This document shows, piece after piece, positions 3,872 to 43,127 of a DNA stretch of 64,000 bases. Numbering within the stretch: the stretch's first letter is position 1; every line of letters starts with the position of its first letter. Location of the stretch: sequence record MW760841.1; one strand, 5' to 3'. The notes beneath the pieces were generated by a model. That model worked only from the letters and a program-made list of their open reading frames with translations, was not told the DNA's origin and ran no database searches. The translations under genes were made by a program, and so were the position numbers.

Positions 3872-4681
3872 ATGAAATCTGTTTTCACTCTCCGTATGCC
3901 TGGACACCTGATTCAGGCAATCGACGCGCACGAAGCCAAAGTCTTTAGCAAGCCTGCCCGCTTGTGGGATCGTATGGCCAAGGCCCTGCCACAGACTGGC
4001 ACCGTCGAACTCATGTACGTGATGGCAACCAACCTCGACCAGACCATCTCTATCATTCACCGTCACGATGGTGAAGAGAAGTGTGTGCGCCTGGCTATCG
4101 CCGATAAAGGTACCGTGGGTAACTTGCTGTTCATTCACTGCATGACCACGCTGCCTCTTTGGATGGCGTTGAGCGGACAGTACGAATTTGACTACATCTA
4201 CTACTACCACCAGAAACTGGCGGAGAATCTGGTTGTGGGCGATCCTTCTACGTACCCACGTTACGTAGAGCGTATCACCCCGCAGATTGCTTCCGAAGTG
4301 GAAAGTGAGCTGGAAGGTGAAGCCGAATGGAACATGTACCGCTTCCTGAAGATTGGTGAATCCCGTGACCCACAGAACACCGTGGCCTTGCGTGCGGTTG
4401 CGCGTTATGTCGCCCGTTCCGTGTCGCGTGAACTGTCCACCAACTTCAACGAAGTGTATCCGGTGGTGCAGTACGGTAACGTAATCACCTTCAACTCGTA
4501 CATTCCCCATCCGGCTCAGATTCTGGGGCCGTTCGATAATGAATGCACTTTGCCAGTCGCAGAAGACTACGGTCTGTACGCGAAGGACGCCGTTCACGCT
4601 GTCAGTGAAGAGCGTTTAGTCATTCATGCATTGAATGGCATGAGTGAACCTGATGTGCCGTATCTGACACAGCAGGGCTAA
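3872..4681 (+). CDS. hypothetical protein
   Basis: 269-aa ORF, AAGGA upstream. Confidence 0.65.
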   Translation: MKSVFTLRMPGHLIQAIDAHEAKVFSKPARLWDRMAKALPQTGTVELMYVMATNLDQTISIIHRHDGEEKCVRLAIADKGTVGNLLFIHCMTTLPLWMALSGQYEFDYIYYYHQKLAENLVVGDPSTYPRYVERITPQIASEVESELEGEAEWNMYRFLKIGESRDPQNTVALRAVARYVARSVSRELSTNFNEVYPVVQYGNVITFNSYIPHPAQILGPFDNECTLPVAEDYGLYAKDAVHAVSEERLVIHALNGMSEPDVPYLTQQG

Positions 4682-5236: not shown

Positions 5237-5289
5237 TTAAAAAAGATTTCAGATATATATTACCTAGGTGAGATTAGAGTATTAATCTT
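5235..5289 (+). promoter_or_regulatory. putative early (virion RNAP) promoter, 55-bp repeat copy 1
   Basis: Contains TATATTAC, the phiKZ early consensus; 54/55 identical to 58012-58066. Confidence 0.75.
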
Positions 5290-13646: not shown

Positions 13647-13716
13647 TTTTTTACGTGGAGACCAAGTGATATGGGCATTCACTCCACGTATTTTGGGATA
13701 GATATTATCCATGTGA
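13647..13716 (+). promoter_or_regulatory. tandem promoters (ACG-N14-TATG plus early motif)
   Basis: TTTTTTACG..TATG 13647-13673; GGATAGATATTATCCATGTGA 13696-13716. Confidence 0.6.
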
Positions 13717-27302: not shown

Positions 27303-27782
27303 ATGCTGATTATCTCTGTCAGTATCGATAAGATATCCCCGGAGACTTATCCGGGATTGCGCAGTTGGATTGAAGAACTAAACGCGATTCGCCAAACACC
27401 GGTGAAAGTTGTCATGGCCGTTGAAGATGACAACGTGATGGGGATAATGGTGTGGGAGCCAGGTCATTTGATTTACCTGGTAGTGCCGGAAGCAGCTCGC
27501 CATTGTGGCGCAGGAACCTTCTTGGTCAAATACCTACTCCAGCAGTCCGAGGGTAAGAAAGCCTCGTGTAAAGTGCTGCCTTCTGCCGTCGATGCAATTT
27601 GTTTCTTTCACAAGCTAGGCTGGCAAATCGTGAGCTGGTATACCGATGTCGAGGGCCGCCGATACTTTCGTATGACGAATGCAGTTTCGCAGCCGTCAAC
27701 GATTCCATCGGAGGAGAAGCAGTTAGAAACGTTTGCTTCCAGCGTGCCTATCTTCCTCTCGATGGCCGGAGGTATTTACTAG
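27303..27782 (+). CDS. GNAT-family acetyltransferase
   Basis: Motif A VVPEAARHCGAGTFL; AICFFHKLGW. Confidence 0.8.
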   Translation: MLIISVSIDKISPETYPGLRSWIEELNAIRQTPVKVVMAVEDDNVMGIMVWEPGHLIYLVVPEAARHCGAGTFLVKYLLQQSEGKKASCKVLPSAVDAICFFHKLGWQIVSWYTDVEGRRYFRMTNAVSQPSTIPSEEKQLETFASSVPIFLSMAGGIY

Positions 27783-31192: not shown

Positions 31193-31660
31193 ATGGATGT
31201 AAAGCTCATTTTGAAACCTGACTCCCGTCTCGGTAAACTCTACTACAACAGTCTGTTACAATTACACAACGATTTGTACGCTGACCAGCGTGCCAAGCTC
31301 AGCGACCTCACTGGTCGTGATGGGTTTGGGGGTGCAGATTCCTTAGACGGGATTTGGACGCCGCTCGATGTGATGGCGGTCGCCTTAGATGAGAAGCAAG
31401 AAGCCGTGGGTTTCTTGTCCTTCGCCATCAGCGGCAAGAACGCGCAGAAATGGTTATGGATTCACAACTTCTTCGTCAGTGACAGTCAACGCGGTAAAGG
31501 CGTCGGCTCGATGTTGATGGATACGGTACGGGACTATGGCAAACAGAAAGGCTGTCGCTTTATGCAGCTGACTGTGCTCGATAACAACGAGGCGGCCTTG
31601 TCCATGTACCAGCGGTTGGGTTTCCGAACTGAAATGCAGGATATGGTTAAGGAGTTGTGA
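31193..31660 (+). CDS. GNAT-family acetyltransferase
   Basis: FFVSDSQRGKGVGSMLM; NEAALSMYQRLGF. Confidence 0.9.
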   Translation: MDVKLILKPDSRLGKLYYNSLLQLHNDLYADQRAKLSDLTGRDGFGGADSLDGIWTPLDVMAVALDEKQEAVGFLSFAISGKNAQKWLWIHNFFVSDSQRGKGVGSMLMDTVRDYGKQKGCRFMQLTVLDNNEAALSMYQRLGFRTEMQDMVKEL

Positions 31661-33700: not shown

Positions 33701-34525
33701 ATGTCCTTAAATCTGACCGAAATCACCAAAACCCCATTCGTCACTATCCCTACCGATGACGGTAAGTATCAGTTTATCTTCTTCCGCAACGGCGAGGATT
33801 GTACAGCGAAGGGTCTACCGAGACACATCAGCCATCGTCTGGTGAATGCGGAGACCGGGGCTACATTGGTGGGTGGTAACATGTTCCCAGTACCGTCAAG
33901 TTGGGAGCTTCCTGATTTACAGGCCAAAATGCTCAAAGTGTTACGCGATGCTTCTGCGCGAATGTTCTTCAAGACTGTCGCTCGGAAAGTAGACTTGTGG
34001 ACGCCTTGGGAATACCATGACCATGACGCTTTGCGTGAACACGCGCCGCGTTACGTGTATATGGAAGAAGTTATTCGTCGTTTCTACAAAGAGGTTTTAG
34101 GTAAAGAATATGTTCGACGTACCCCGCAGGAGGGTGAGAGTTTCTTCCATCGGGTGAAGTGTACAGAGAACATTCGTGGCAGTTATAAGGACTACACCAT
34201 TCACGTCCACCGTGAACTGGAGTTGTTCTGCCCGAGCAGTAATTTGGTTAACCTCCGTGGTATGTATGTATCGTGCGAGTTCGCGGCACCGTTCTTGGTC
34301 GGTAGTAAAGATCGCAACGCCAACCAACTCTCGATGCGCTTTGAGTACCCGATTGATAAATGGCCGGGTCTGAAAGCCTTCCTTGCTGAGCCACGCGTCG
34401 AAGCGGTGCTTGATGCTTGGATTGCCGCAGCGTGGAGCGAAGAACAACGCGTCCAGGCAAAGAACCCTAACGCTCGTGAATCACCGAATGCGGTCTTCAT
34501 GGCGAAAGAGGTTTCGGAAGGGTAA
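33701..34525 (+). CDS. hypothetical protein (paralogue of next gene)
   Basis: 274 aa; shares C-terminal YP-x3-WP-x2-KAF motif with next gene. Confidence 0.7.
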   Translation: MSLNLTEITKTPFVTIPTDDGKYQFIFFRNGEDCTAKGLPRHISHRLVNAETGATLVGGNMFPVPSSWELPDLQAKMLKVLRDASARMFFKTVARKVDLWTPWEYHDHDALREHAPRYVYMEEVIRRFYKEVLGKEYVRRTPQEGESFFHRVKCTENIRGSYKDYTIHVHRELELFCPSSNLVNLRGMYVSCEFAAPFLVGSKDRNANQLSMRFEYPIDKWPGLKAFLAEPRVEAVLDAWIAAAWSEEQRVQAKNPNARESPNAVFMAKEVSEG

Positions 34526-34619: not shown

Positions 34620-35372
34620 ATGATTCCGAAGAAGCACCACATCAATCTCGAGAAGTCCATTAACGAACCTATCGGGGGACTACAAACCAACCCGTATCTC
34701 GAAGAAGTCGGGGTATTTGATAACCCCGACGCCGTGTACAGCATTCATTTCTTTAGAGACGTTGAGACGAAGTACAGCGCAAAGGGTGTGGTCGTTCTTA
34801 AAGAGACCAAGAACATCTGCCGTGTCCTGCCGAGTATGGCGGATATGGTGAAGGTGAAGGGCAAGATGGTGTGGAAACCAGAGAGCTTTTATTATCCGAT
34901 GTACATCTTACTGGGCGAGATAGCGTTCAAGCGCTGGTTGGGCAAACCCGATGTCCGGGAAGCATTAGCGATAAATGATGAGCAGTTCATCAAAGATGTT
35001 GATGCGCTATGGCACAGCTTACTGGTGCATTACAAAGCGGCGTGTGCGGTAGTGCGTCCTAACCGCCGTGGTTTGTGGGATTATGAAATACTAACCTGGG
35101 GCACGAATATTCGCTTCCAGTACGACGGGAAAGAACGTCGCGGGCACCGCAAGCTGACGTACAGGTTCTCTAAAGACCCCCGTAAACCGAACCGGGTTGA
35201 AGTGGAGTACCGTTTCGATGTTAACAAGCGCGACACCGACCTCCCAACGCTGACCCTCCGCCGCAAGTACCCGCTAGAGAGTTGGCCAAACACCAAAGCC
35301 TTTGTCACTAACCCGAAGAATATGCGTTACCTGGATATTCTGTACGAAGAAGCGGCAGAGGCCAACAAATAA
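34620..35372 (+). CDS. hypothetical protein
   Basis: 250 aa; CTATCAAGG upstream. Confidence 0.7.
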   Translation: MIPKKHHINLEKSINEPIGGLQTNPYLEEVGVFDNPDAVYSIHFFRDVETKYSAKGVVVLKETKNICRVLPSMADMVKVKGKMVWKPESFYYPMYILLGEIAFKRWLGKPDVREALAINDEQFIKDVDALWHSLLVHYKAACAVVRPNRRGLWDYEILTWGTNIRFQYDGKERRGHRKLTYRFSKDPRKPNRVEVEYRFDVNKRDTDLPTLTLRRKYPLESWPNTKAFVTNPKNMRYLDILYEEAAEANK

Positions 35373-37318: not shown

Positions 37319-38011
37319 ATGAGGAGCATCAAAATGGTTGCAACTACACGTTTGACCCAACCCCCTAAGAGCCGCAACGCAACGGACAAAAAGAAATTAG
37401 ATGTCCGCCCAAGCAACACCGGTACCGGTAAAAGTGCTGAGCCAGAAAAGCCAGCAGTGATTGAGCCAGAAGTGCTCATCTTCCCACCGCAGGCACCTGT
37501 TCACGGTAAGCTCATCATCAACCTGTACCAGGGTGATTACCGTCTGTCCGTGTTCCAGGACTCCACCATCAATACCTTTGTGGTCTACCACAAAGACGTT
37601 ATCCTGGGTGTGATTCGCGGACACCGTCGTACGTCTATCTCCACGTACGCCCTGCATGTGTCGGTTATCGCGCGCCTGGCCATTAACGTATCGGAAGAAG
37701 CAGCATCCGAATACCTGGCCGTCGCGGCGTTCTTCGATAACAACCTGCGCGCTTATACCGCTAAGCAACCACTTTACGTGGACTTGCAGTACAGCTACAC
37801 CACCCCGAATGGTCAACATACGGGCTACATGTTCATCGCCGGTAAGAACGTGGCGTATGATGATGAAGTCGGCGATGACGCGAAAGAAATCTTGTTCCGT
37901 GCGATGCCGTACATCAAGAATTTCGCTGACCGTTATGCCAACGTTGAGCATGAGCACGACACGTTGTTAGTGGGTGCCAATCTCTCCACGGACCTGTCCT
38001 GGAAACAATAA
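37319..38011 (+). CDS. hypothetical protein
   Basis: 230 aa; basic disordered N-terminus. Confidence 0.65.
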   Translation: MRSIKMVATTRLTQPPKSRNATDKKKLDVRPSNTGTGKSAEPEKPAVIEPEVLIFPPQAPVHGKLIINLYQGDYRLSVFQDSTINTFVVYHKDVILGVIRGHRRTSISTYALHVSVIARLAINVSEEAASEYLAVAAFFDNNLRAYTAKQPLYVDLQYSYTTPNGQHTGYMFIAGKNVAYDDEVGDDAKEILFRAMPYIKNFADRYANVEHEHDTLLVGANLSTDLSWKQ

Positions 38012-38019
38012 CAATTAAT

Positions 38020-38077
38020 AAGGGGGCTTCGGCCTCCTTATATTTTTTGTCTTTTTACGTTTGCTATAGATCTTGTG
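38020..38077 (+). terminator. terminator followed by TTTTTACG-N14-TGTG promoter
   Basis: AAGGGGGC-TTCG-GCCTCCTT plus T tract; ACG 38057-38059, TGTG 38074-38077. Confidence 0.7.
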
Positions 38078-38103: not shown

Positions 38104-39051
38104 ATGTATACCATTGCGCGAGTATTTTGGGGCGGTCCTCATGCCCGTAAACTGCGCGAGTTGTTACAACCGGGCACAGACTCGGCATACCGGCTCGATG
38201 CGTTCTTAAAGAATCCTTCCATCTGCGTTTACGGCCTTAAAATGGGCGACGAGTGGGGCGGGTATTTCGCCACCTCCAACGTACCGGGTGATGAGACCCT
38301 GGCCTGCCATCATTTCACACAGTTGAAAGCCCACGCTATTCGTCCCTCGACGATTCAACTGCTGCTTGACCACACCGGGACTTCCAATCTCATGATACTG
38401 GGTGAGACTGAGAAGCAAATCTCCCGTCTGGAGAACCTGGGCTTTATTCTGATTGAGAACAACTGGTCTGCGCAAACGAAACCGTATGCGGAGCTGGAAG
38501 TGGATAAACACGCTGTGGATATCTCACTGGCCCTGGCTGATAATGAACTCAGTGATTCCGAACTGCATGAACTGAACGTGGTGCTCTCCTGCTCGATTAT
38601 GCAAGAGGGCGAATACGACCCGCTGGAACGTTGGATTCTGAGTTCGATTCGTCCTGACCAGGTTATTGAACGTGGGCGTACCGGTCAATACCGCACCGTG
38701 GTGTGGCGGGAAGACGGACATATTCTCGGTATCGCACAGCTGGAGTACACCAACTGGGGTGGCGTGTCCTTAACCGGGATGGGTGTACACCCTGACCATC
38801 AGAAACGCCGTATTGGTCGTAATCTGGTTGCCGCTGCCATGAAGCTGGCTTCGCAGTCCCACGAAGAAATCAGCGCGACCACTTTCGCGGGCAATCTTCC
38901 GGCGGAACACTTGCTGGGTACCTTATTACGCTACACCAAGCTACCCGGTTCGTACGGTATCGGTAAGACCGAAGACACGGTGTCCTGGAAACGTACCAAG
39001 GGCTTCAAAAAACTTGCTGACCGTGAACTCGGACCGATGTTAACTGAATAA
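38104..39051 (+). CDS. tandem GNAT-domain acetyltransferase
   Basis: C-terminal motif A GVHPDHQKRRIGRNL and GNLPA; N-terminal half ends RLENLGF. Confidence 0.75.
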   Translation: MYTIARVFWGGPHARKLRELLQPGTDSAYRLDAFLKNPSICVYGLKMGDEWGGYFATSNVPGDETLACHHFTQLKAHAIRPSTIQLLLDHTGTSNLMILGETEKQISRLENLGFILIENNWSAQTKPYAELEVDKHAVDISLALADNELSDSELHELNVVLSCSIMQEGEYDPLERWILSSIRPDQVIERGRTGQYRTVVWREDGHILGIAQLEYTNWGGVSLTGMGVHPDHQKRRIGRNLVAAAMKLASQSHEEISATTFAGNLPAEHLLGTLLRYTKLPGSYGIGKTEDTVSWKRTKGFKKLADRELGPMLTE

Positions 39052-39060
39052 GAGGTAAGG

Positions 39061-39885
39061 ATGCAGCGCGCTATTTTAAAATGGGTCGGCGGTAAGTCCC
39101 GTGTGATACCGGCCTTAAAAAAAGTTCTGCCAGAAGGTGATTGTCTGGTCGAACCGTTCGTTGGCAGTGGTTCCGTGTTCCTGAATACGGATTATGCCCA
39201 GTATCGCCTGTCGGATTCCAATCCTGACTTGGTACTGGTGCTTAAAGTGGCCTCAGAAGCTCCTGACGACCTTATAGAAGCTTGCGAAGAGCTATGGGGC
39301 ATGGGATTCGATGAAGACACCTACGCGACGCTGAAGGCCAAATTCAACGACCGTAAGAATATCACCATTGAAGACAGCATTGACCGCGCTGCACTGTTCA
39401 TTTACCTGAACCGTCATGGCTATAACGGTCTGTGTCGTTACAATGGTAGTGGGGGCTACAATGTCCCACACGGTAAGCCGGAGTCTGCTCCGTATTTACC
39501 ACGGGCGGAAATTCACGCATTCTGGAAGAAATGCTCCGAGTGCGAAGTGATTATTACCTGTCAGGATTTCACCGAGTCATTGGTGAACCTGCCCAAGAAC
39601 GCGGTGGTCTATTGTGACCCGCCCTATATTCCTCGCTCGAAAACCGCAGCATTTGCGCAGTACCACAAAAGTCCTTTCGGACAACAGCAGCATCGTGTGC
39701 TGGCTAAGCTGTTAAAGGCGGCCCACAAAGACGGTGCAAAGGTTGTGCTGTCGAACTCGGATACGTTGTTGACCAAAGACATCTATTACGGGTTCGAATG
39801 GCAGACGATTGTTGTCGGACGTTACGTGGGGGCAAAAGCTGACAAGCGGGGCAAGGTTAACGAACTTATCGGGATTCTGAAATGA
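39061..39885 (+). CDS. dam: Dam-family N6-adenine DNA methyltransferase
   Basis: LKWVGGKS, VEPFVGSGSV, YLNRHGYNGLCRYN, VYCDPPY. Confidence 0.93.
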   Translation: MQRAILKWVGGKSRVIPALKKVLPEGDCLVEPFVGSGSVFLNTDYAQYRLSDSNPDLVLVLKVASEAPDDLIEACEELWGMGFDEDTYATLKAKFNDRKNITIEDSIDRAALFIYLNRHGYNGLCRYNGSGGYNVPHGKPESAPYLPRAEIHAFWKKCSECEVIITCQDFTESLVNLPKNAVVYCDPPYIPRSKTAAFAQYHKSPFGQQQHRVLAKLLKAAHKDGAKVVLSNSDTLLTKDIYYGFEWQTIVVGRYVGAKADKRGKVNELIGILK

Positions 39886-40685
39886 AACTGGTTCAATACC
39901 AAATTGATAACGACCAGATGGCGGTGCAGTTCAACGGCAAGATGGCGCGTATCGATAAAGTCTGGACTGCTCTCTCGCAGTTTCGAGGCGGTCTGTGTGA
40001 CCACACTGAACACTACATGATTCTATCAAACAGTGACCGTGTGTTGATGTACTTTAACGGCACGCGTAGTGGCCGTCATTTTTATATCCAGGGTTTCAGC
40101 CCGTTGGCTGACCAACCGTTCAAGCAGTGGAATGCACTGCGTCGTGAACTGGAAGTCAGTTATCTGGAACTGATAACGGGTGCAGAAGGAGGGAGTGTTC
40201 GTGCGCAGTTTGAGTCAATGGGGTTGTCGTTTGTGACGAAGCGTGTGCTCTTCACCATCACAGACCCAAGCCTCGTCTCATTCCCAACGTGCGGCATTCA
40301 GTTGCAGGACAACAGCTCGCTTGACGAGATTGCTGCTTTGTGTGAACTGGCTAAGAAAAAGCTGGCAGGTGCCGAGGATGTCTTAGCCAGTGCTGCTGCC
40401 GGGGCAACCAGTGTGCAGATGCGCTTTACCGGCAACGTCTTAACCAGTGCCATGTTCTACAGTGAGCTGGGGAAAGAGATGTTGGTGAGCGAAGCCTTCG
40501 TGTCCGTGTACCCAGTTGGGAGCATGGAATACGCCGGTGAATTCATCGAGCACTTCCGGGGGATGTTGGGGCGTTGTGCGAATGAAGGGCGTGAGTTCTC
40601 TATCGCATTAGCAGCCGAAGCCAAGATTCCAGAATACGAGGGTATTAAGCACGAGGTACGGTCTCACCACTACACCTTCACCTAG
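39882..40685 (+). CDS. degenerate tandem GNAT-like protein
   Basis: 267 aa; mid-protein FESMGL motif; ATGA overlap with dam. Confidence 0.45.
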   Translation: MKLVQYQIDNDQMAVQFNGKMARIDKVWTALSQFRGGLCDHTEHYMILSNSDRVLMYFNGTRSGRHFYIQGFSPLADQPFKQWNALRRELEVSYLELITGAEGGSVRAQFESMGLSFVTKRVLFTITDPSLVSFPTCGIQLQDNSSLDEIAALCELAKKKLAGAEDVLASAAAGATSVQMRFTGNVLTSAMFYSELGKEMLVSEAFVSVYPVGSMEYAGEFIEHFRGMLGRCANEGREFSIALAAEAKIPEYEGIKHEVRSHHYTFT

Positions 40686-40693
40686 GAGCCTGA

Positions 40694-41494
40694 ATGAAAC
40701 AGTTACGCCTGGTAGAAGAAACAGAGTACCTCTCTAGCCGCGAATGGCTACGGAAGCACAATGTAGAATATTTTCAGAGGCAGTGCGTGAATTACGAGCG
40801 CGATATTGACGAGGACGTGTTCCGTCTTGTCACGGTGTTCGTCGGTGAAGAAAGGGCAATGATGCTCTTGTTACTTGACCGCCTTTTCATGCTGGAAATA
40901 CTGGCCATTAACACCAATCCAGAAATCCCGGTGCCCAGTATTACCAAACTGCTTCTGCGGCAGCTGCAACGTCCCCGCATCATCACGTATGCGCGGGAGT
41001 ACGAAGAGCAGTATGTCGAGATGGGGTTGCCGGTTGTGTCCATCAACTACGCCCGCCCCATCATCCCAGGTAGACGTGACGATAAACGTTTCACGGCAAA
41101 CGTCGCTTCGCTGTACCACGATAAAGAACAGTTCCGCATCTATGTGCGCACCACCCTGGGAGAAGACCCGGCGGTTGAATCGGTACTCAACTCCAATGGG
41201 TTGTTCTCCCTGTTGATTACTGAGGAAGGTGCACAGGTTGCGGCAATTGTGAGTCGTGGTGAAAATCGTTGGGTGATGTCTGACCCACAGATTCTTCGTG
41301 TGTCTGGAAATGTACCGGTATCCGATGCGGTCTTTGGCCGCTTTATCGAATGCCTGATGGCCTGCTTACCGAAAGGAGATACCCTCGTGTATTCTTCGAC
41401 GATACAGGCAGCGAACAACCGGGTAACGTGGCTGATTATGAACGGCTTCGTCCCTGAAAGCTATTTGCACCATCGTGCCCTAAAGGAGAATTGA
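40694..41494 (+). CDS. degenerate tandem GNAT-like protein
   Basis: YVEMGL mid-protein and ANNRVTWLIMNGF at C-terminus. Confidence 0.5.
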   Translation: MKQLRLVEETEYLSSREWLRKHNVEYFQRQCVNYERDIDEDVFRLVTVFVGEERAMMLLLLDRLFMLEILAINTNPEIPVPSITKLLLRQLQRPRIITYAREYEEQYVEMGLPVVSINYARPIIPGRRDDKRFTANVASLYHDKEQFRIYVRTTLGEDPAVESVLNSNGLFSLLITEEGAQVAAIVSRGENRWVMSDPQILRVSGNVPVSDAVFGRFIECLMACLPKGDTLVYSSTIQAANNRVTWLIMNGFVPESYLHHRALKEN

Positions 41495-42252
41495 TGAGAG
41501 AGATTACCGAAGAGGTTGTCAAAGGCAACTACCCTAAACCGCTTGGCCGGGGTTTATTGAAGTGGCGTATTGATGACCTGGATACCGAACGCGGTGAAAC
41601 CAAACATATCGTGGAACTCGATAATGGCGACATTGCTTATGTGCGCAAGTTGGCAAACAGCCTGCTGGTCACTGACATCGATATCCTCTATGGATTGACT
41701 GGCGCTACGCTGGTAGGGTTACCAGAGTGTCTGGGGGCACAACATGCCTTCCTGTACAGCTCGAAAATTGACGACCCGATGCCGAAGCAGCTGGGCATGG
41801 CCTTGCGTACCGTCACCATGCGTAAAGACGGCCAGTACGAAATGGACTGCCCGGAAGGTTTCGAAGTAGACGTGGTGTTGTCTGACGCTGAAATGGCTGC
41901 GCTGTTGAGCGGTGCGGAAACCAGCGAAGGTCTACGTCTGGCCATCGGTGACATTGGCCGGGGTATCTCTTTCCTGTGTCGTGTCAAAAGCCAACTTGGT
42001 GATGCGTTGCTGATTGTTGACCGTGACCCTGATAACGGCTTAACCCTGAACTGCTTCACCGCCGCCGGTACCCAGGATGTGTTACGTATCCTGGACGGGT
42101 TTGATTACCTGGTATCGAAAGCCCCGTACGGTTATTACAATGCCGTGCATGACCATGAAGTAGAAGTAGACCTTGCCGACTACATGGCAAGTAAAGGCTT
42201 TAAACCTAAAACCTCTGTATTCGCTGTTACTGCTGCCCCTAAAGGAGAATAA
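41491..42252 (+). CDS. degenerate tandem GNAT-like protein
   Basis: PKQLGM mid-protein and DYMASKGFKP at C-terminus. Confidence 0.5.
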   Translation: MMREITEEVVKGNYPKPLGRGLLKWRIDDLDTERGETKHIVELDNGDIAYVRKLANSLLVTDIDILYGLTGATLVGLPECLGAQHAFLYSSKIDDPMPKQLGMALRTVTMRKDGQYEMDCPEGFEVDVVLSDAEMAALLSGAETSEGLRLAIGDIGRGISFLCRVKSQLGDALLIVDRDPDNGLTLNCFTAAGTQDVLRILDGFDYLVSKAPYGYYNAVHDHEVEVDLADYMASKGFKPKTSVFAVTAAPKGE

Positions 42253-42253
42253 G

Positions 42254-42562
42254 ATGTCCATTAATCGTTCCGTATCTCGCTCTAAAGAAATCGTGTACAC
42301 CGTTGAAACCAAAGACGAAGTCGGTCAGTTCCATGCGGTTATCGATGATCGTCATATCCTGCTGGTGACTTTCCCTGGCGACACCATGAGCAGCCGCCGT
42401 CACACTGGCCTGCTGGATGATCTGTTGAAGAAAGCCAAAGCCCGTGATGGGATTGCTGACCATCAGATGCTGTACACCAAGGTACTGAAGGCCGAAGGTA
42501 AAGAACTGTTGATCGTACCGGCTGACCCTGAACTGCGGGCAGCGGCTAACGCGCTCAATTAA
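42254..42562 (+). CDS. hypothetical protein
   Basis: AAAGGAG SD before ATG 42254 (MSINRS). Confidence 0.65.
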   Translation: MSINRSVSRSKEIVYTVETKDEVGQFHAVIDDRHILLVTFPGDTMSSRRHTGLLDDLLKKAKARDGIADHQMLYTKVLKAEGKELLIVPADPELRAAANALN

Positions 42563-42600
42563 TGGTCATTCTATGAACCTTTAAACGATGAGGAAAGGCG

Positions 42601-43089
42601 ATGGAAGTTATTGACTTCGAGCAGTTGCCTCAACATGACTTCGACCTTGACGTTCGTAGCGAAGACAATGCTGATGCTAACCTGTTAATGCAGCGCTATT
42701 ACGCGCTAGTGACAGGCAATGAAAAAGACGAGGTTAGCCTTGGCGATTTCGAGAAAATGTTGGTAGGTCTGATTGGGTCAAATGCCTCACATGTGGCGTT
42801 ACTCAATGAGCTGAACTTCACTACGGTCGAACCATCTGATGCAGCCATGGTTCTCCGCGAGAGTATCGTTCCGAACGAGGAAATCCTCGATAAGATCGCT
42901 GCTCTTCGTGGCCCGTTCGATGAAGCGGTAGAAGACTACACGGAACAACTGAAAGAAGCAGGGTTGACCCTGTGTGCTCCGGTTGACCCGAATCCTAGCA
43001 TTGAGCAGGAAGAGGAAGCCCGTGGTCGTCTTGCGCGTTATGTCATTACCAGCGTGCTGGTTGACGACCGCGAAGAAACCCAGCTTTAA
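42601..43089 (+). CDS. acidic helical hypothetical protein
   Basis: 162 aa; about 36 D/E vs 12 K/R (hand count). Confidence 0.7.
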   Translation: MEVIDFEQLPQHDFDLDVRSEDNADANLLMQRYYALVTGNEKDEVSLGDFEKMLVGLIGSNASHVALLNELNFTTVEPSDAAMVLRESIVPNEEILDKIAALRGPFDEAVEDYTEQLKEAGLTLCAPVDPNPSIEQEEEARGRLARYVITSVLVDDREETQL

Positions 43090-43092
43090 GAT

Positions 43093-43127
43093 AATCCCTC
43101 ACTTAGCGGTGAGGGATTCTTTTTTTA
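43093..43127 (+). terminator. intrinsic terminator ending the GNAT/dam operon
   Basis: AATCCCTCAC-TTAGCG-GTGAGGGATT plus T tract. Confidence 0.75.

Follow-up and report, generated by a model that had tools for sequence, protein, structure and literature searches.

An orphan dam gene within an array of tandem-GNAT-fold genes in an SPN3US-like Erwinia jumbo phage

Tandem GNATs carry two acetyltransferase domains of the GNAT family in one chain of ~250-330 residues; mycothiol synthase MshD (1ozp/2c27), VipF of Legionella (6wqb/7wx5), MAB_4324 (7q3a) and clavulanate ORF14 (2wpw) are examples. The Mom protein of phage Mu is a single-domain GNAT-fold enzyme that is not known to have a classical acetyl-coenzyme A (acetyl-CoA) site, and in Mu there is a regulatory link between Mom and Dam. 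Rac, from another group of phages, is also a single-domain GNAT, and the FemABX-type enzymes are not known to have a motif A (CoA loop). Here we describe a unit of seven genes, all on the + strand, at positions 38104-43089 of a 64,000-nucleotide stretch of sequence record MW760841.1 (the window). In order, the genes are p1, dam, p3, p4, p5, p6 and p7. Four of them (p1 and p3-p5) encode proteins with a modelled or very probable tandem-GNAT fold, and dam encodes a DNA methyltransferase.

The window is from the Erwinia jumbo phage pEa_SNUABM_4/8, an SPN3US-like Machinavirus. Across the 5.15-kb interval, identity is 100% to both pEa_SNUABM_4 and pEa_SNUABM_8 (both genomes are 249 kb) and 75-84% to ChrisDB, pEa_SNUABM_9 and Caitlin. 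SPN3US is a genetic model for nucleus-forming phages, and it is reasonable to view pEa_SNUABM_4/8 as a probable nucleus-forming phage by relatedness. A methylase in such a phage is uncommon, not unique.

On balance, the unit is probably an accessory cassette with an active tandem-GNAT acetyltransferase (p1), an orphan GATC methylase (Dam), pseudo-GNAT paralogues (p3-p5) and two conserved small proteins (p6 and p7). In this duplicated array, which includes an annotated GNAT, a single copy keeps the cofactor loop. The initial annotation of this DNA had proposed a modification system, in which one catalytic and three pseudo-GNAT subunits form a complex that is coupled to Dam. We have removed "modification system" as unsupported, for the reasons given below.

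Folds and divergence of the GNAT-like proteins

p1 matches Acetyltransf_1 from Pfam (E = 4.6e-11), over residues 191-270 only, and the matches of its profile to solved GNATs are confined to residues 184-277. In this C-terminal domain, the loop Q-K-R-R-I-G (R-K-R-G-I-G in SPN3US) is a near-canonical motif A; the N-terminal domain is degenerate. The fold of the N-terminal half comes from a homologue, gp131 of phage Kwan (317 amino acids, annotated as a GNAT), which matches the p1 hidden Markov model (HMM) with E = 5.8e-56. In BFVD, the model of Kwan gp131 aligns to our model of p3 across 276 columns (E = 2e-10, TM 0.61). The ratio of nonsynonymous to synonymous substitution rates (dN/dS) for p1 is 0.05-0.09. 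Judging from these similarities, p1 is likely to be a catalytically competent acetyltransferase.

Sequence comparison gave no hint of the fold of the next proteins. Searches of p3-p7 against Pfam, NCBIfam, PADLOC and the PDB (by sequence or profile) gave no meaningful match, and p3-p5 belong to three PHROGs (9941, 13677 and 15621) whose function is not assigned and whose members are hypothetical proteins in all of the relatives examined. We searched 1.84 billion protein representatives with a p3 profile (using HMMER) and obtained 11 matches, of which 10 were full-length p3-type proteins and none were to p4, p5 or known GNATs. Word-indexed searches with p3, p4 and p5 found matches in the same phage clade only; p3 is present in 53 phage records.

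In the structural models, we considered a protein to be a tandem GNAT if it had two consecutive beta1-alpha1-alpha2-beta2-beta3-beta4-alpha3-beta5-alpha4-beta6 domains. The AlphaFold models of p3 (built from 13 sequences; pLDDT 85, pTM 0.70) and p5 (pLDDT 83, pTM 0.72) have this architecture, with two GNAT-type beta/alpha units. When compared to the PDB with Foldseek, the best matches of both models were all tandem GNATs, with probabilities of 1.00 and E values of 1e-7 to 9e-9. For p3, the top match was VipF (6wqb, E = 9e-9), followed by 3tt2, MAB_4324, ORF14, MshD and FemX; for p5, it was ORF14 (2wpw, E = 1.5e-7), followed by MAB_4324 and VipF (TM 0.52).

For p4 and the N-terminal half of p1, we used the p3 model as a query against BFVD. 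The top matches outside the p3 family were annotated GNATs of phages Derbicus (289 amino acids, E = 7e-11) and Kwan. For p4, an exact-sequence look-up showed that BFVD entry J7KKF1 is the homologue from phiEaH2, and its model aligns with the p3 model across 247 columns (E = 1.3e-5, probability 1.00, TM 0.52). Given this homologue's model, p4 probably has the tandem-GNAT fold as well.

These results bear out what the initial annotation had read from the sequence: that p1 is a tandem GNAT with an acetyl-CoA motif, that the four proteins share a layout in two halves, that the halves mostly end in x-G-[FLM] turns, and that the last three proteins lack a recognizable motif A. The fold search that it had called for linked p3 and p5 to solved tandem GNATs. 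The x-G-[FLM] strings are all present, and in the models of p3 and p5 they lie at the alpha4-to-beta6 turn, which is the position of GNAT motif B. Sequence searches of p3-p5 with Pfam, NCBIfam and the PDB identified no pyrophosphate-binding loop for acetyl-CoA (motif A, Q/R-x-x-G-x-G/A), and the beta4-alpha3 loops in both halves of p3, p4 and p5 are not conserved within each family. Going by these sequences, p3-p5 are most likely pseudoenzymes.

Alternatively, p3-p5 might be active transferases whose donor is not an acyl-CoA (such as aminoacyl-tRNA or an acylated acyl carrier protein), as with FemX-type proteins or Sbb17. FemX, FemA and the aminoacyl-tRNA-dependent peptide synthases Sbb17/Sba18 are among the significant structural matches, with E values of 1e-5 to 1e-6. 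Catalysis with another donor is also conceivable because each family keeps several invariant polar residues (in p3, for example, H44, N50, R88, R121, C154, H263 and Y264). However, tandem GNATs that use acetyl-CoA score better, and the matches to Fem-type proteins are ~1000-fold weaker. Also, the matched Fem proteins are longer (335-402 residues), so that p3-p5 are 60-150 residues shorter, and we found no sequence similarity between them. We consider it unlikely that p3-p5 use another donor.

Are p3, p4 and p5 paralogues? All-against-all BLASTP of p1-p7 gave nothing below E ~0.1, and when we compared profiles built from 7-13 sequences per family, all of the probabilities were under 8%. With 14-30 sequences per family, p3 matched p5 with a probability of 61% (E = 8e-5) in an alignment that was collinear over the whole length, and p4 matched p5 with a probability of 40% (E = 3e-4), also collinearly. 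The alignments of p1 with p3 (3%) and of p3 with p4 were collinear and not significant. p4 and p5 have an invariant N-terminal E-x-T motif in common. In Derbicus, the p1 HMM matches two adjacent genes, gp102 (E = 2.5e-21) and gp103 (E = 1e-17). Local duplication followed by divergence is an economical reading of the origin of p3-p5, and it is moderately supported by these comparisons.

All of the genes in the unit are under purifying selection (dN/dS of 0.03-0.26), which indicates that they are functional. p5 is the fastest-evolving member of the array: it is 64% identical to its counterpart in ChrisDB and 47% identical in Caitlin, whereas the values for dam are 96% and 85%. When ChrisDB and pEa_SNUABM_9 are compared, the nonsynonymous divergence (dN) is 0.43 for p5 and at most 0.10 for the other genes in the unit. 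p5 is an allelic hot spot, which suggests allele exchange or diversifying pressure.

In several SPFM Salmonella phages, p4 (gp107) is shortened or rearranged (158-262 amino acids) and matches the p4 profile partially.

The loss of the cofactor motifs, the variable number of copies (see below) and the truncated p4 of some SPFM Salmonella phages would also be expected if the open reading frames (ORFs) downstream of dam were decaying duplicates without a function. However, dN/dS is 0.06-0.2, at least five genera have the ORFs intact and at full length, invariant residues are found in each family, and the AlphaFold models are confident. We view decay as very improbable.

Dam, GATC sites and gene order

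Dam is a clear member of its family. It matches PF02086 (E = 3e-52, 178 bits, cut-off 22) and TIGR00571 (243 bits, cut-off 115), and it aligns over its full length with E. coli Dam (2g1p, E = 1.3e-62); the match to T4 Dam is far weaker (~1e-7). It contains the DPPY motif (VVYCDPPY), the FxGxG loop for S-adenosylmethionine (SAM) (EPFVGSGSVF) and the NRxGYNGLCRYN hairpin. In the alignment, the hairpin region LNRHGYNGLCRYN...NVP is near-identical to that of E. coli Dam, as is the N-terminal LKW-GGK; we take these residues to be the ones that contact DNA. Among PADLOC models, it fits "orphan methyltransferase" best, and dN/dS is just 0.025. From its similarity to E. coli Dam, the target of the phage enzyme is very probably GATC.

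GATC is rare in the window, with 79 sites observed versus 302 expected (a ratio of 0.26). CATG, GTAC, AGCT, TCGA, CCGG, TTAA and ATAT are within 10% of expectation; the other low tetranucleotides are CTAG (0.34), AATT (0.64) and TATA (0.73). There are no GATC sites within 38104-42252; between 8 and 20 kb in the window, they are more closely spaced. We also counted GATC in related jumbo-phage loci (L002-L006, L013, L016, L018, L022, L023 and L027), and it was depleted in every one (ratios of 0.15-0.60). Because the Derbicus locus, which lacks dam, is equally depleted, we attribute the depletion to the clade as a whole rather than to the operon. We considered the GATC at 38069, in the promoter region, as a site for autoregulation by Dam, and rejected it: it is kept in the closest relatives only.

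The gene order is retained, with variations, across Seoulvirus, Machinavirus, Erskinevirus and Wellingtonvirus. p1-dam-p3-p4-p6-p7 is found in SPN3US, SPAsTU, pEa_SNUABM_29 and Proteus phage 7, while p1-dam-p3-p5-p6-p7 is found in phages of the Machina type and in Kwan. All three degenerate copies (p3, p4 and p5) are present in the window's subgroup. In one metagenomic contig (p1-dam-p3-p6-p7), p3 is the sole degenerate copy, so the number of degenerate GNAT copies after dam ranges from 1 to 3, depending on the phage. p1 is absent from the locus in Asesino, in phiEaH2 and in a metagenomic contig related to them, which have dam-p3-p4-p6-p7. In every dam-carrying relative from the SPN3US-like clade, dam and p3 are adjacent, and they overlap or are no more than ~10 nucleotides apart.

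In Asesino and phiEaH2, the promoter block described below lies ~230 nucleotides 5' of dam. The gap between the motif and dam, where p1 is found in other genera, has no annotated gene (4153-4440 of locus L005 and 4156-4354 of locus L013). Either a deletion that left a scar or an untranslated leader could explain it.

Beyond this clade, the genes come apart. Derbicus and RisingSun are more distant Erwinia jumbo phages. The Derbicus locus has a thymidylate kinase, two GNATs of tandem length that match Pfam, a 296-amino-acid protein with no Pfam match, and a homologue of p6; we did not find dam in the locus that was examined, just the GNAT array and p6. In RisingSun, the homologue of Dam (36% identical) is a solitary gene on the strand opposite to its neighbors. 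The array and the methylase can thus exist independently: Derbicus has the former and no dam in the locus examined, and RisingSun has a dam gene by itself. The synteny that the initial annotation proposed to check is kept, with variations, within the SPN3US-like clade and is absent from the loci examined in these two phages.

This bears on whether Dam and the GNAT-fold proteins could be one system, for Mom-like hypermodification of adenine or for Dam-dependent acylation of a protein or RNA target. The gene for Dam lies inside a single transcription unit, it is translationally coupled to p3 or nearly so in all of the dam-carrying relatives, and GATC is strongly depleted. Also, the absence of motif A would not disqualify p3-p5 as modifiers, because no classical CoA site is known in Mom itself. 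However, Dam and GNAT partners do not co-occur wherever either is found (Derbicus, RisingSun and Erskinevirus are exceptions), and p1 is dispensable in Erskinevirus. Furthermore, p3-p5 are acidic (isoelectric points (pI) of 4.5-6.9; 4.7 for p5), and the depletion of GATC is as strong in the dam-less locus of Derbicus. Scanning p1 and p3-p7 with Pfam and PHROGs revealed no similarity to Mom, and no Mom entry was among the 50 best BFVD matches to p3. As relatives can have the methylase gene separately from the acetyltransferase-like ones, a joint DNA-modification system seems quite unlikely.

A narrower version would involve p3, which alone among the degenerate copies follows dam in every dam-carrying relative and is singled out as a potential partner for this reason. 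p3 might be a CoA-independent enzyme or a specificity factor that works with Dam on the DNA of the phage, for example to convert or extend N6-methyladenine or to redirect methylation, and p4 and p5 would be diversified variants. We give this just a slim chance of being correct. If it were, this would amount to a novel route of adenine modification in nucleus-forming phages.

Leaving Dam aside, the GNAT-fold proteins might form a hetero-oligomeric acetyltransferase, in which p1 is catalytic and p3-p5 regulate it or select substrates, so that it acts on different host proteins. The co-transcribed genes comprise one likely active copy of this fold and three degenerate ones, and tandem GNATs in which one domain is inactive and binds the substrate are established (MshD and VipF). 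However, p3 and p4 are found without p1 at the locus in Asesino, phiEaH2 and the related metagenomic phage, and the number of copies varies from 1 to 3. These findings argue against the obligate complex of one catalytic and three pseudo-GNAT subunits in the initial annotation, and we think that the hetero-oligomer is fairly unlikely.

Our preferred explanation, the accessory cassette, could work as follows. p1 would be an acetyltransferase of the MshD/VipF type with two domains, of which the C-terminal GNAT domain would bind acetyl-CoA and carry out the transfer, and the degenerate N-terminal GNAT domain would help to hold the acceptor (either a protein or some small molecule). Local duplication of a tandem-GNAT gene of this kind would have given rise to p3, p4 and p5. 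Neither half of these proteins would have retained the pyrophosphate-binding loop, and they would now be non-catalytic binding proteins that act against host or phage targets. Binding by pseudoenzymes would fit these proteins because they are acidic, they vary in copy number, and p5 diverges rapidly. Dam would be an unremarkable GATC methylase, an orphan of the enterobacterial type. Its gene would have entered the unit, behind p1, in the ancestor shared by Seoulvirus, Machinavirus, Erskinevirus and Wellingtonvirus; insertion into a pre-existing GNAT array is the simplest history. Dam would methylate the few GATC sites that are left in a strongly GATC-depleted genome. We infer that it acts independently of the GNAT-fold proteins.

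Several points weigh against this explanation. First, the evidence for the fold of p4 and of the N-terminal domain of p1 is indirect, via models of their homologues. Second, losing motif A does not prove that cofactor binding or catalysis was lost, and the invariant polar residues of p3-p5 could form an active site. Third, the constancy of the dam-p3 pair, across four genera and metagenomic contigs, leaves a small residual chance that the two are partners. The shared gene order is itself weak evidence because the genomes are collinear throughout, and with collinearity across the genomes, neither the synteny nor the exceptions to it weigh heavily.

Overall, what is new is that PHROG families 9941, 13677 and 15621 can be assigned to the tandem-GNAT fold; they are added members of a fold that was already known. 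For SPN3US, this gives a testable handle on accessory genes: are their products pseudoenzymes that bind host factors, and where are they and Dam located relative to the phage nucleus? The strong depletion of GATC in a clade of phages that encode Dam bears on why the methylase is kept.

The transcription unit and neighboring genes

The genes and the likely signals around them are listed in Table 1. The first hairpin closes an upstream unit (a helix-turn-helix regulator, a zinc-ribbon protein and p0), and a hairpin is found at the same place in relatives. The stop codon of dam overlaps the start codon of p3 (ATGA), as the initial annotation had noted. It had described an operon of five proteins, and although the sizes of p1 and p3-p5 stand, p6 and p7 went unmentioned. 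p5 would have 253 amino acids if it started at the TTG at 41491.

Table 1. Features of the GNAT-dam unit, with positions in the window.
Feature	Position	Strand	Basis or description
terminator-like hairpin	38018..38041	+	10-bp stem with 5 GC pairs, then T-run
promoter-like motif TTTTTTGTCTTTTTACG	38043..38059	+	conserved block upstream of the unit
p1, tandem GNAT, 315 aa	38104..39051	+	Pfam GNAT match, model of homologue
dam, orphan N6-adenine DNA methyltransferase, 274 aa	39061..39885	+	PF02086, TIGR00571
p3, tandem-GNAT-fold protein, 267 aa	39882..40685	+	AlphaFold model, Foldseek
p4, probable tandem-GNAT fold, 266 aa	40694..41494	+	model of phiEaH2 homologue
p5, tandem-GNAT-fold protein, 252 aa from ATG	41494..42252	+	AlphaFold model, Foldseek
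p6, function not assigned, 102 aa, motif KAKxRDGI	42254..42562	+	PHROG 7896
p7, very acidic conserved protein, 162 aa	42601..43089	+	PHROG 8221
terminator-like hairpin ending the unit	43093..43118	+	11-bp stem, then TTTTTTT

The initial annotation had also placed a promoter at 38052-38077 and a terminator at 43093. A hairpin does lie at the latter position. A promoter scan found no sigma-70 promoter at the former, so we rejected a promoter of that type; a conserved block does overlap this region. The sequence that had been proposed as a promoter starts with TTTTTACG, which is part of the block TTTTTTG[TC]CTTTTTAC[GA]. The block is retained upstream of the unit in 15 of 15 aligned relatives, which range from ChrisDB to SPN3US, Kwan and two contigs from metagenomes. 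The flanking sequence diverges, whereas the block itself has just small variants, in the loci that are most distant. TTTTTACG occurs 8 times in the window, versus 2.7 expected, mostly 5' of genes. The promoter-like motif also precedes other genes on the + strand and has no copies inside the unit, which supports the view that the genes form one apparent transcription unit, from the promoter-like motif to the terminator.

Intergenic copies of TTTTTAC(G) on the + strand are at 13648, 26647, 33627, 35406, 36169, 38052 and 44347. They often lie directly after a terminator hairpin and 42-93 nucleotides 5' of the start of a gene. The motif is a candidate class of promoter, not of the sigma-70 type and probably read by a phage RNA polymerase. 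A second intergenic motif, AGATAGATATTAT[TC]TA, is found on the + strand at 5250, 12192, 33237, 36208, 43793, 49347 and 58027 (7 in the window, versus 0.06 expected). It resembles the consensus for early promoters of phage AR9, AAATATATATTAT (PMC5312081). The GNAT-dam unit has no copy upstream of it, which points to a different temporal class for this unit.

p6 is present in all of the relatives, including Derbicus (gp105, E = 1.2e-17), and has no match in the PDB or Pfam. p7 has a pI of 4.1 (4.1-4.3 across the family) and a net charge of -24, with an invariant DDRE at the C terminus and a QLPQHDFDL block at the N terminus. It has no match in the PDB and no known relatives. As a guess, p7 might be a DNA mimic or an anti-restriction protein.

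Other GNATs are encoded elsewhere in the window. There are single-domain GNAT genes at 27303-27782 (Pfam E = 1e-5) and 31193-31660 (E = 1e-19), and overall, the window has at least three GNATs that are recognizable from their sequences, plus cryptic ones. The genes at 33701-34525 (274 amino acids) and 34620-35372 (250 amino acids) are apparent paralogues, as linked via gp128, gp129 and gp130 of Kwan (E = 5e-10 to 2e-3). In the same run of Kwan genes, gp127 (215 amino acids) is a structural match to the p3 model (E = 5.5e-6), so more GNAT-like genes may lie upstream. p0 (37334-38011; 225 amino acids) is conserved and has a basic, low-complexity N-terminal region of 40-60 residues. We considered p0 as a fifth paralogue and rejected it: its profile is not similar to the array, and it is located before the terminator.

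Comparison with known systems

A literature search on the products of these genes in SPN3US, or on phage tandem GNATs, yielded nothing specific. A phage GNAT that has been proposed to acetylate host proteins is Rac, from phiKMV-like phages. More broadly, acetylation of host proteins has been predicted for the GNATs of jumbo phages in general (Iyer et al. 2021, PMC7824862).

Like E. coli Dam, P1 Dmt and T4 Dam, the phage Dam is a full-length enzyme of the D12 class with DPPY and the SAM loop, and it is an orphan without a nuclease partner. Its recognition hairpin is of the E. coli type. Unlike those enzymes, it is encoded within an array of GNAT-fold genes, in a genome with a quarter of the expected number of GATC sites.

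Like Mom from phage Mu, p3-p5 are phage proteins with a fold from the GNAT superfamily and without the classical acetyl-CoA motif. Unlike Mom, which has a single domain, p3-p5 have two domains, and they are acidic. The FemABX-type transferases share a tandem GNAT-like fold with p3-p5, and their structural matches to p3 and p5 are significant but weaker.

The closest systems are the tandem GNATs: MshD, VipF, MAB_4324 and ORF14 are the best structural matches of p3 and p5, and the phage proteins likewise have two GNAT domains in a chain of similar length. p3-p5 are just ~10% identical to the solved tandem GNATs, with TM of 0.4-0.5 and a different orientation of the domains, and sequence methods do not detect the relationship. 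p1 resembles the MshD/VipF type in having a degenerate N-terminal domain and the acetyl-CoA loop in its C-terminal domain. In contrast to that type, p3-p5 have no recognizable cofactor loop in either half, and they form a local array of paralogues in a phage.

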